The notes under the pieces: model-generated
Databases searched by the model: none
Seen by the model: only the letters and a program-made list of their open reading frames with translations
What the model was told of the DNA's origin: nothing
Made by a program: the position numbers and the translations under genes
Virus record (IMG/VR): IMGVR_UViG_3300036715_004471
Location: 1 to 64,000 of that record
Reading direction: 5' to 3' (one strand)
DNA length: 64,000 bases
Part shown: positions 10,546 through 61,556 of the stretch, one piece after another
Layout of the letters: each line of letters opens with the position of its first letter
How positions within the stretch are numbered: the stretch's first letter is position 1

Positions 10546-10632
10546 TGGTAGCGCTGGTGGGACTCGAAACCACACGCCCACAAGGGGCAACGGATTTTAA
10601 GTCCGTAGTGTCTGCCATTCCACCACAGCGCC
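10546..10632 (-). tRNA. tRNA-Leu(UAA)
   Basis: GGCGCTG/CAGCGCT acceptor, ACGGA-CTTAAAA-TCCGT anticodon arm, long variable arm, TTCGAGT loop, encoded CCA. Confidence 0.93.
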
Positions 10633-15217: not shown

Positions 15218-15231
15218 AAATCCTTTATAGG

Positions 15232-15303
15232 TGGTTCCAAAGGGAATCGAACCCTTATAGCCGGGGTTAGAATCCGGCGCCCTAGCCGTTGGACGATGGA
15301 ACC
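15232..15303 (-). tRNA. tRNA with CUA anticodon (amber suppressor type)
   Basis: GGTTCCA/TGGAACC acceptor, GTCC/GGGC D stem, CCGGA-TTCTAAC-CCCGG anticodon arm, AAGGG-TTCGATT-CCCTT T arm. Confidence 0.85.
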
Positions 15304-20284: not shown

Positions 20285-20370
<86 letters not shown>

Positions 20371-58472: not shown

Positions 58473-59108
58473 CTACTTCAAACCAGGCTCATTGCGGAAG
58501 AGAGCGTCGCTCATCTTTTGGTAAAGACCCTTGAACGAAGCGAAGAGAAAGTCAATCAGCTTGCGCAGGGGGTCGTTGATGACCGTGCCAACCATCGAGA
58601 ATGGCCAGAAACCAATCCAGCCAGTGATACGCGACTTGTGATCGCTGGCGCGGGGGCGCATATTCCAGGTGCCACCGTAGTAGTGGCGATCTCTGAGACC
58701 GTAAGAATACGTCTCTTGCATCGTCGTACCACGATCGATGACCGTGATATAGCCGGTACGAAGAAACTCGGAAAAATCGTGAGATAGACTCTCTGGAATC
58801 TGAGCATCGGGATCCAGACCGCGCTTCTTGAGGAACCAAGACTTGCGCTCACGATAGGCATCGCGGAATCCGATGAGGAAGAAGAACCACTTACCGAAGC
58901 TCCAGACCACACCGGCAATCAGGTAAGCTCCTGCAAAGCACAGGGCAGTCTGCCAGTTCTCCACAATCCAGGAAAGAACAAGCGCTTTGTTCACCCAGAA
59001 GTAAAGCCCGCCCGATGCTAGGAGACACAGGGTAGTCCAGGTCCACTTCTCGAAAGCGGTGAAGATGACGCACAAGAGGATGACAAACGCGAGTCCCAGC
59101 CAAAGCAT
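58473..59108 (-). CDS. membrane protein
   Basis: Several TM segments; WIGFWPFS. Confidence 0.7.
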   Translation of the reverse strand: MLWLGLAFVILLCVIFTAFEKWTWTTLCLLASGGLYFWVNKALVLSWIVENWQTALCFAGAYLIAGVVWSFGKWFFFLIGFRDAYRERKSWFLKKRGLDPDAQIPESLSHDFSEFLRTGYITVIDRGTTMQETYSYGLRDRHYYGGTWNMRPRASDHKSRITGWIGFWPFSMVGTVINDPLRKLIDFLFASFKGLYQKMSDALFRNEPGLK

Positions 59109-59171
59109 TGAACTTTTCCTTGAAAGATTTTACAGTCAAAGTCCCGAGAACATCTCGTGGACCAGTGATTG

Positions 59172-59960: not shown

Positions 59961-60116
59961 CTCCCCAACCAGAAGTGGTGCTTTGAAGGCAGAAGTCTAA
60001 CCACCAACCATCCCAGTTATTAGGACCGCTGGCATGAAGCATAAACTTCTTCCTCAGTTTCAGAATCTGCATCCGAATTTCTGCTTCGGTTAGCATGACT
60101 CAATTACCTTTCTTAG

Positions 60117-60295
60117 TGCGCCTAATGGGAGGCGAACCCACAACCTCCATCGTGTTAGGATGGCACTCTTCCTGATGCTTATGCTTATCGGACAGTGTAA
60201 GAGTTACCCCCACACGAAAGGAAGCTTGCGCATCCAAGTGCAGGAGGATTACTTAGCAGTGCCGGGCAAGGCATGAATTTTTGAGCTTCAGGCGC
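60117..60295 (-). ncRNA. tRNA-like RNA (179 nt)
   Basis: GCGCCTG/TAGGCGC + A; GTGGG-TTCGCCT-CCCAT; several internal hairpins. Confidence 0.6.
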
Positions 60296-60525
60296 GAAAC
60301 GTGGTGCGCCTAATCAGCACACCAAAACTCAGGCTTAGGACTTACCGGGTTACGATTTGGTGTCCAGCCAACCACACACATACGGATGCGAATCACTCCA
60401 TTTGCACCTGTCTATTATCCTTTGCAGGATTCACCAAGCAGCGTAGGTATGAGATTGCAACCGATATCTATGCAGTATTTATAATCCAGATGTTCGTGGG
60501 CTTGCGCCGGGGTCTTACCTCATCA

Positions 60526-60593
60526 TGCACGCGGGGATCGAACCCGCCATCTCCACAATTTATTGTGGTGAGTTCTCTTTGAACTCTTCTGCA
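60526..60593 (-). ncRNA. embedded tRNA-like cloverleaf
   Basis: GAGTTC/GAACTC, CCACAA/TTGTGG, GCGGG-TTCGATC-CCCGC. Confidence 0.55.
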
Positions 60594-60699
60594 ACAATGA
60601 AACTCAACCTCCATAAAACTGGCTCACGTAGATAGAATGCTTTTAAGGCATTACCTATGAACCAACAAGCATATTGTTAATCTCGCAAAAATCTTAGCA

Positions 60700-60780
60700 T
60701 CGCTTGTGTGGACTCGAACCACATAGCCTAAGCACCTCACTTAAAATGCGAGGCGACTCTCCCAGGAGTCAAACAAACGA
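60700..60780 (-). tRNA. embedded atypical tRNA-like element (UUU loop)
   Basis: TCGTTTG/CAAGCGA, GACTC/GAGTC, CCTCGC-ATTTTAA-GTGAGG, TGTGG-TTCGAGT-CCACA. Confidence 0.6.
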
Positions 60781-61016
60781 AACCTCAGCGAGCACTCATC
60801 TTGCCAGCCATCGAGAACCTCACGGTCTCAACATGAGATAGTACATCTTTCTCAGTTGCCTTGCGGCACCAGTCGCACAGATGATAGTACCTCAACCCAA
60901 CTTCATGGCATCTGGGTAACCCAAGTGGCTACCTTTGTTTTGGTGCGCTGACTAGGCGCACAACATCTTTTACTTCAAAAACAGTTCGCGATCTTGTTGG
61001 AGACCGCAATCACTGT

Positions 61017-61262
61017 TCAGCGGCTCTTGCCCACGCGCGCAGTCGCGTCCGTCCACGAGTACGCGAAGCGCTTGCGCTTGACGTTGTAATCGCCCTTGGT
61101 CCAAGCATAGGTCACCGTACCGTTGGTGGCACGAAGCTCACCATCGAAGGTGTAGTAGAAGCTCAGGGCACCAGCCAACGTGGCATTCTTCGGAAGACCC
61201 GAATAAGCGCCAGGGTTGAGCGTCTGCAAACGGGCGGCGTCGAAACCGATTCTCTTGTTCAT
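61017..61262 (-). CDS. hypothetical protein
   Basis: 81 aa, AAGGA RBS. Confidence 0.6.
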   Translation of the reverse strand: MNKRIGFDAARLQTLNPGAYSGLPKNATLAGALSFYYTFDGELRATNGTVTYAWTKGDYNVKRKRFAYSWTDATARVGKSR

Positions 61263-61283: not shown

Positions 61284-61556
61284 TTAGATGGGATTAGCGG
61301 GACGCTCGAAATGAAGAGCACTCCACCAAGCCTGGTATCGTTGAAGCGTGTACGTATCCGTAAACGTGTTGAAAATCTCTGTGAGCTTGTCTCGTGTCTG
61401 ATCTCCATTGAAAAGACCCCAATCTGTATTGACCATTGTGCCATGGTAAGCAACCATGTACGTTTCCCACTGCCTATCAAAAGTTTCCTTATCTGGCAAT
61501 GGGAAAATTACAAGAGGAGCTTGACCTCTTTTGACGCGAACTTTTCTGGGAGTCAT
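61284..61556 (-). CDS. hypothetical protein
   Basis: 90 aa, AAGGA RBS. Confidence 0.6.
   Translation of the reverse strand: MTPRKVRVKRGQAPLVIFPLPDKETFDRQWETYMVAYHGTMVNTDWGLFNGDQTRDKLTEIFNTFTDTYTLQRYQAWWSALHFERPANPI

Follow-up and report, generated by a model that had tools for sequence, protein, structure and literature searches.

Locus, gene order and relatives

The element lies on the minus strand near the end of the DNA analysed here (the window), which is the first 64 kb (64,000 nt) of the 446,541-bp viral contig IMGVR_UViG_3300036715_004471. Read on the minus strand, the region runs 5'-GUGCGCCUAGUCAGCGCACCAAAAC...GUUUUGGUGUGCUGAUUAGGCGCACCA-3', and its two ends are complementary. A repeat search reported arms at 60301-60333 and 60932-60964 (33 nt, 85% complementary), which is the strongest inverted repeat with arms up to 1200 nt apart in the whole window; the other three are 70-82% complementary. 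G60961-C60304 opens a 25-bp helix, of which the only two non-Watson-Crick positions are G.U on the minus strand and would be A.C on the plus strand. The 3' end reads GAUUAGGCGC-A-CCA. No minus-strand ORF of 60 aa or more lies inside, and the largest is 48 aa. Two tRNA-shaped modules were present: ARAGORN called tRNA-Lys(UUU) at 60699-60780, and 60593-60526 folded as a four-way junction with a GGUUCGAUCC T arm. So the observation of the preliminary description, a stretch of about 660 nt closed by a G.U-tolerant helix ending in ACCA, lacking a minus-strand ORF of that size and holding two cloverleaves, is confirmed. The minus-strand fold had a minimum free energy of -252.6 kcal/mol (z = -6.3 against 20 shuffles), but the plus strand also folded well (z = -7.8), so folding energy alone does not fix the strand and it had to be settled by comparison with relatives.

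Homologs of the flanking proteins led to contigs of related uncultured phages (about 430-450 kb) with the same gene order: two phiEco32-type COOH-NH2 ligases, a GGACT-domain protein, a conserved protein of about 90 aa, and then a non-coding gap of about 0.9 kb which holds a homolog of the element. Including the window there are seven lineages, and the others are named here by their locus numbers: L005 (82% identical over 943 nt), L021 (= L022, whose contig ends soon after the element), L006 (= L007 and L012, a 452-kb phage from the same sample), L020, L023 (= L024-L026) and L038 (= L030, from a 433-447-kb AT-rich phage, found by a pattern scan). A covariance model of the conserved 5' domain (R1) scored the seven lineages at 99-152 bits and hit nothing else in about 470 kb of fetched DNA, which included all the chance pattern hits, the rest of the window, and two more distant phages with homologs of flanking genes (L003 and L008). 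L003 and L008 had no copy by blastn either.

Other searches added little. Blastn of the region against GenBank phages found no match, and a flanking ligase gave only relatives below 31% identity, so there is no cultured system. An exact 18-mer of the closing helix matched only the window's own contig in IMG/VR. The 16-mer GATGTACTATCTCATG gave 12 loci, of which 10 were chance matches in coding DNA. A three-block pattern gave 13 loci in metagenome contigs, of which only L038 is real, and five in genome contigs, none of them real; a looser pattern in IMG/VR found nothing new.

The terminal inverted repeat of 25-33 nt could suggest a DNA-level element, such as a MITE-like transposon or a replication or packaging site. 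Dispersed copies and target-site duplications had been set out in advance as the signs of a MITE, and neither was found: the element is single-copy in the window and, at pattern level, in the whole 446-kb contig, and no target-site duplication flanks it. It also keeps its syntenic position in diverged phages, and changes in its arms follow RNA pairing rules on one strand only, so we consider this reading very unlikely. Protein coding is more unlikely still. The 93-aa GTG ORF on the plus strand is not conserved, because ORFs differ in position and size in L005 and L023, and the alignment of the window with L005 has many 1-2-nt indels that break the frame.

Table of features at the locus, with window coordinates
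Feature	Position	Strand	Description
Large structured RNA	60304..60961	-	From the first to the last base pair of closing helix P1; 658 nt, or 660 nt with the CA overhang to 60302
P1 5' strand	60931..60961	-	Pairs with 60304-60334; one small internal loop; 31 consensus pairs, 21 with compensatory changes; 94% of cells canonical; 0 of 1000 column shuffles reach the observed values
P1 3' strand	60304..60334	-	
ACCA	60302..60305	-	At the 3' side of P1
P2 5' strand	60917..60925	-	CUUGGGUUA; pairs over a long range with 60344-60352; L020 and L038 carry compensatory GAA/UUC-type changes
P2 3' strand	60344..60352	-	UAACCCGGU
P3 5' strand	60909..60915	-	CCAGAUG; pairs with 60486-60492; 4 of 7 pairs compensatory
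P3 3' strand	60486..60492	-	CAUCUGG
Conserved 5' domain	60791..60930	-	Invariant blocks UUGAGG, UGCGAC, CUAUCUYAUG and GAUGA; GNRA hairpin (loop GCAA, 60861-60864)
P7 and variable domain	60658..60810	-	P7 (60800-60810 with 60658-60669) encloses the variable domain; enclosed loop 135 nt here
Cloverleaf 1	60699..60780	-	tRNA-shaped module inside the variable domain; accessory, not a decoding tRNA
P8 hairpin and P5 3' strand	60623..60657	-	P8, 60629-60657; P5 3' strand, 60623-60628, pairs with 60832-60837
Cloverleaf 2	60526..60593	-	Four-way junction; T arm (60531-60547) keeps a UUxxA T-loop in six lineages; 'anticodon' arm is a closed hairpin
Second GNRA hairpin	60499..60508	-	Loop GCAA, 60502-60505
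Variable 3' domain	60353..60485	-	Aligns poorly between lineages; few consensus pairs
Spacer	60296..60301	-	6 nt (CGUUUC), between P1/ACCA and the tRNA-like element
tRNA-like element	60114..60295	-	Acceptor GCGCCUG/UAGGCGC; D stem GCUC/GAGU; 102-nt insertion in the D-loop, closed by its own stem; anticodon loop CUAACAC (60152-60158); normal T arm; discriminator A60117, then CUA; no CCA encoded
Terminator-like hairpin and U run	60986..61009	-	Between the upstream ORF and the RNA; not conserved in other lineages
Upstream ORF	61017-61262		
Largest minus-strand ORF inside	60468-60614	-	48 aa
GTG ORF	60301-60582	+	93 aa

Consensus structure and covariation

The preliminary description had proposed covariation among homologs as a check, and it was found. 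RNAalifold on the seven-lineage alignment predicted 110 pairs, 60 of which have changes on both sides that keep the pair. The counts and controls on the alignment of 811 columns were computed in Python: 93.3% of pair cells are canonical, against 36-40% when the 3' partners are slid by 1-3 columns. None of 1000 within-column shuffles reached the observed pairing or the number of compensatory pairs, for the whole structure and for P1 and P5+P7 taken separately, while P3 and P2 are weaker but point the same way. There are only seven lineages, three of them close relatives, so the covariation counts are inflated by shared ancestry, and the consensus structure was derived from the same alignment on which it was scored. 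G.U cells outnumber A.C cells 119 to 11, which means that the RNA is read from the minus strand of the window, like the neighbouring genes.

The model is nested. Helix P1 is present in every lineage with a different sequence and spans 482-676 nt; inside it follow the long-range helices P2 and P3, the conserved 5' domain (60891-60811 in the model), helices P5 and P7 closing the variable domain, the P8 hairpin, which with P5 and P7 makes up a central junction, the tRNA-shaped four-way junction, the second GNRA hairpin, and a 3' domain. The 3' third of the RNA aligns poorly and is structurally unresolved in this alignment, and it is the least conserved part of the family.

The interpretation in the preliminary description, a possibly new class of large CCA-tailed phage RNA, is only partly supported: a single large structured RNA on the minus strand, conserved with covariation, is supported, but the CCA tail and the cloverleaves as family features are not. 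ACCA follows P1 only in the window/L005/L021 clade (3 of 7 lineages), and the other four end P1 with unrelated letters: CAUCUUG followed by AAAA in L006, CACCUUU by AAC in L020, CUUGCGC by ACAUG in L023, and UUUUUAU by UAU in L038. Cloverleaf 1 sits in the loop closed by P7, which is 118-140 nt in four lineages but only 48-72 nt, with no cloverleaf, in L020, L023 and L038. Its 'anticodon' loop is AUUUUAA in the window, 8 nt in L005 (where ARAGORN reports a 4-nt anticodon) and different again in L021. Cloverleaf 2 is absent from L038, the shortest member. Neither module of the window reached E<=10 with the Rfam tRNA model. The cloverleaves are therefore accessory modules on a core of about 480 nt.

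Because three tRNA-shaped modules lie within 850 nt, and jumbo phages commonly carry tRNA arrays, we considered a decaying cluster of tRNA genes or pseudogenes, with the flanking complementarity fortuitous or a recombination scar. However, the conserved core lies outside the cloverleaves and survives in lineages that lack them, P1, P2 and P3 covary, and pseudogenes would not keep 81% identity to L005 alongside the coding genes. This reading is very unlikely.

The linked tRNA-like element

The preliminary description missed a tRNA-like element 6 nt downstream of the large RNA (60295-60117). Such an element begins 3-22 nt after P1 in all six lineages whose contig extends far enough, and its start is also present in the truncated L021. 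All four arms covary (28 pairs, 17 compensatory), G18G19 and the T-loop are kept, and the D-loop carries a 75-122-nt insertion closed by its own covarying stem. The anticodon loop is CUAACAC in four lineages, CUCAUAA in L023 and 8 nt long in L020. CCA is encoded in four of six lineages. Rfam tRNA scores were 16.7-24.3 bits (18.4 in the window) against a threshold of 29, and ARAGORN recognised only the L038 copy, as Val(AAC), after the insertion was removed in silico. So the features point both ways, and we do not assign the element as a tRNA or exclude it from the tRNAs. Full-text searches found no description of D-loop-expanded tRNAs in jumbo phages.

This element explains the second copy of the 11-nt AUUAGGCGCAC: in the window lineage the large RNA and the tRNA-like element happen to share an acceptor-strand sequence, and other lineages do not. 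The idea that this direct repeat marks an integration site or a split tRNA was rejected, because the tRNA-like element has its own 5' acceptor strand at 60295-60289 and the repeat is lineage-specific.

The linkage raises the possibility that the large RNA does not act in trans but is a giant cis-acting partner of the tRNA-like gene: a structured leader directing its folding, processing, modification or charging, or a ribozyme that acts on it. The short spacer and the 11-nt sequence shared in the window lineage are in favor of it, and in IMG/VR a pattern for the anticodon and T-arm region, with the CUAACAC loop, matched only phages that also carry the large RNA. On the other hand, no base-pairing between the two RNAs covaries above a row-permuted null, the shared 11-mer is not conserved, and Rfam recognises no catalytic motif. 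We regard this as the main rival to the explanation given below, though a doubtful one.

Comparison with known RNAs and possible function

A hit to GOLLD, ROOL, OLE, HEARO, tmRNA or RNase P had been named beforehand as what would remove the novelty. Rfam 15 with gathering thresholds found nothing in the region, and at E<=10, on short stretches with permissive filters, the window, L006, L020, L023 and L030 gave no hit to these models or to the domain V/VI and D1-D4 models of group II introns. The most conserved block, CUAUCUYAUG, is absent from the published ROOL/GOLLD/OLE alignments, although gap characters in those files could split a motif. Full-text searches found no description of such an RNA. 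It means that this is a new family of large phage RNAs, GOLLD/ROOL-like in kind but not in membership.

ROOL (RF03087; Weinberg et al. 2017, PMC5737381; cryo-EM in PMC12286853) is a large phage or prophage RNA of similar length (mean 581 nt; env-120 is 659 nt), with many multistem junctions, often next to tRNAs, and with no known protein partner or function. The present RNA is matched with it in viral location, length (660 nt) and a tRNA-like neighbour, but not with its covariance model (sequence plus P1-P19 structure). It has an unusually long closing duplex of 25-31 bp, the tRNA-like element follows it in each lineage where this could be seen and not just often, and it is restricted so far to one clade of uncultured jumbo phages. 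GOLLD (RF01998) is also a giant phage-associated RNA near tRNAs, with a conserved and a variable part and sometimes with tRNAs in its linker, as the tRNA-shaped modules are embedded in variable sites here. GOLLD often exceeds 800 nt and conserves its 3' region, whereas here the 5' domain is the conserved one and the embedded modules are not decoding tRNAs. Both ROOL and GOLLD form homo-oligomeric RNA-only cages (PMC5737381; PMC12286853 and its preprint); assembly of the present RNA was not assayed. With no hit at E<=10 in the five divergent members searched, a very divergent member of either family is very unlikely.

The paired ends with ACCA on a large RNA of a big phage resemble tmRNA, the 5' GUGCG is the group II 5' consensus, and the AACCCGG/UUGGGUU long-range pairing noticed by eye is reminiscent of RNase P P4. 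Besides the absence of Rfam hits, ARAGORN found no tmRNA, no T arm lies next to the acceptor strand, and the third acceptor pair is G-C rather than G.U (G3.U70 in tmRNA). Within the element, ORFs of at least 40 aa differ in position and size between lineages, which is against a conserved tag-peptide frame; shorter tag-sized frames were not examined. GUGYG, unpaired in group II introns, is here paired within P1 and covaries with CRCAY. Neither this resemblance nor the P4-like one is supported by Rfam or by the pairing pattern. A divergent tmRNA, RNase P RNA or ORF-less group II intron is thus very unlikely.

Bacterial and phage RNAs of this size and structural complexity are very rare, and the known ones are rRNA, group II introns, GOLLD, ROOL, OLE and HEARO. 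Each newly found class has either revealed new biochemistry or, like GOLLD and ROOL, stayed a prominent open question. The present family adds an independent example with an architecture backed by covariation, a compact natural minimal version of 482 nt (L038), natural insertion sites that tolerate tRNA-shaped modules, and an invariant link to an expanded tRNA-like element, which make the recurrent association of giant phage RNAs with tRNAs directly testable. It also shows that huge uncultured phages carry large non-coding RNA genes which annotation pipelines and Rfam currently miss.

The analysis itself establishes a conserved, covarying, single-copy RNA gene on the sense strand of an operon, with a nested multi-domain fold, two GNRA hairpins, a T-loop hairpin, and lineage-specific modules at peripheral sites, two of them tRNA-shaped in this window. 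How the RNA is made and works is our inference. In most lineages the upstream ORF stops 5-60 nt before P1, no sigma-70-type promoter was found, and the next ORF starts about 20 nt after the tRNA-like element, so the RNA is probably cut out of a polycistronic transcript. There are no expression data, as no RNA-seq run holding the sequence was listed, so the transcript, its ends and its stability are inferred too, and the tRNA-shaped modules might themselves be cut out, leaving fragments rather than one 660-nt species. RNase P cleavage at the 5' end of the tRNA-like element would release the 3' side of the RNA, with trimming back to the duplex, which in this lineage would leave an ACCA-like overhang. 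In MALAT1/mascRNA-type 3'-end formation RNase P likewise cuts at a downstream tRNA-like structure, but that system is eukaryotic, and the element here keeps all four arms and carries a large D-loop domain. The nearly perfect P1 would act as an RNase III-type processing stem, like the duplexes flanking rRNAs in their polycistronic precursors, and/or as a protective clamp against exonucleases. Here the duplex may be part of the mature RNA; neither cleavage was tested.

The GNRA loops and T-loop point to a compact tertiary fold. The function is unknown. By analogy only, we favor a trans-acting compact RNA particle, in the manner proposed for GOLLD and ROOL; no self-complementary loop or other oligomerisation signal was looked for systematically. 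A link to tRNA or translation is likely because of the tRNA-like partner, and the ACCA end and the 11-nt match would be peculiarities of this lineage, not the working principle. We hold this explanation as a whole to be only somewhat more probable than not. A more speculative possibility, which we consider improbable but not excluded, is a two-part RNA machine of the large RNA, as a new class of giant phage RNA, and its obligate neighbour, a tRNA whose D-loop carries a structured domain of about 100 nt, for example an RNA-only cage or ribozyme that holds, matures or charges a non-standard tRNA (anticodon loop CUAACAC) in huge phages that also carry a suppressor tRNA. That would be an RNA-based addition to the translation apparatus with no described counterpart.

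The nucleotide identity of the RNA to L005 (81%) is within the 70-84% range of the flanking coding genes. Near-identical DNA relatives were seen in sediment, aquatic, freshwater and sludge metagenomes, without the variant positions inside the RNA being covered by that comparison. In one metagenomic relative, a contig of a single sequencing run (X6), conservation of the RNA is higher than that of coding DNA, with 2 of 166 positions different in the RNA against 21 of 285 in a nearby ORF.

tRNA-like element and tRNA genes

Directly after the large RNA, we found a tRNA-like element in which all four arms covary; in the window its D-loop carries a 102-nt structured insertion, its anticodon loop is CUAACAC (AAC), no CCA is encoded, and neither ARAGORN nor Rfam calls it at threshold. 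The element is present directly after the large RNA in every lineage. An exact 11-nt direct repeat, GTGCGCCTAAT on the plus strand, forms both the 3' acceptor strand of this element and the 3' strand of the closing helix P1 of the large RNA. As a result, the tRNA-like 3' end could also pair with the 5' end of the large RNA over 11 bp in this lineage, which is not conserved elsewhere.

The tRNA with anticodon CUA is of the amber-suppressor type; it is labelled Pyl by ARAGORN and scores 55.5 bits with the Rfam tRNA model. Together with the two tRNA-Leu(UAA) genes and a record of proteins read through stops, it suggests TAG recoding in this phage.

Features and coordinates in the window and in the related phage L006
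Location	Strand	Feature
60114-60295	-	tRNA-like element
60116-60126 and 60304-60314		11-nt direct repeat
15230-15303, 10546-10632, 20285-20370	-	tRNA with anticodon CUA and two tRNA-Leu(UAA) genes
1-64000		G+C content and GC skew trends
60986-61009	-	intrinsic-terminator-like hairpin with a U run
61284-61556	-	90-aa ORF
60810-60975 versus 58884-59167		comparison with a metagenomic relative (run X6, activated sludge)
L006 7437-8095		diverged copy of the large RNA (JGI 3300036715, contig Ga0373634_0000014, 451,948 bp)

Upstream sequence and base composition

Between the upstream 81-aa ORF and the RNA, only about 20 nt before P1, lies the terminator-like hairpin, which is not seen in the other lineages, where the upstream stop codon abuts the RNA. 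The 90-aa ORF has no Pfam match, and it is the only small protein conserved directly upstream of the RNA in all six lineages compared (L021, another lineage, was not included). It is a candidate partner protein. The G+C content rises steadily from about 34% at the start of the contig to about 56% at 62-64 kb, while cumulative GC skew falls monotonically.

Divergence of the large RNA among related phages

Phage L006, a second, related jumbo phage from the same sample as the window, carries a strongly diverged copy of the RNA, in which P1 has an entirely different sequence and cloverleaf 1, the tRNA-shaped module of the variable domain, is replaced by other hairpins. The metagenomic relative from run X6 differs at 2 of 166 positions in the 5' part of the RNA but at 21 of 285 in a nearby ORF, and its sequence becomes unrelated 14 nt upstream of P1. 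This suggests that the RNA is more constrained than its neighbours, or has been exchanged between phages.

In lineage L020, both hairpins that carry GNRA-type tetraloops (GCAA, GAAA or GAUA) in most other lineages carry AUUU instead (columns 139-142 and 526-529 of the seven-lineage alignment A4). This is a coordinated switch, which might reflect a shared receptor or just AT drift.
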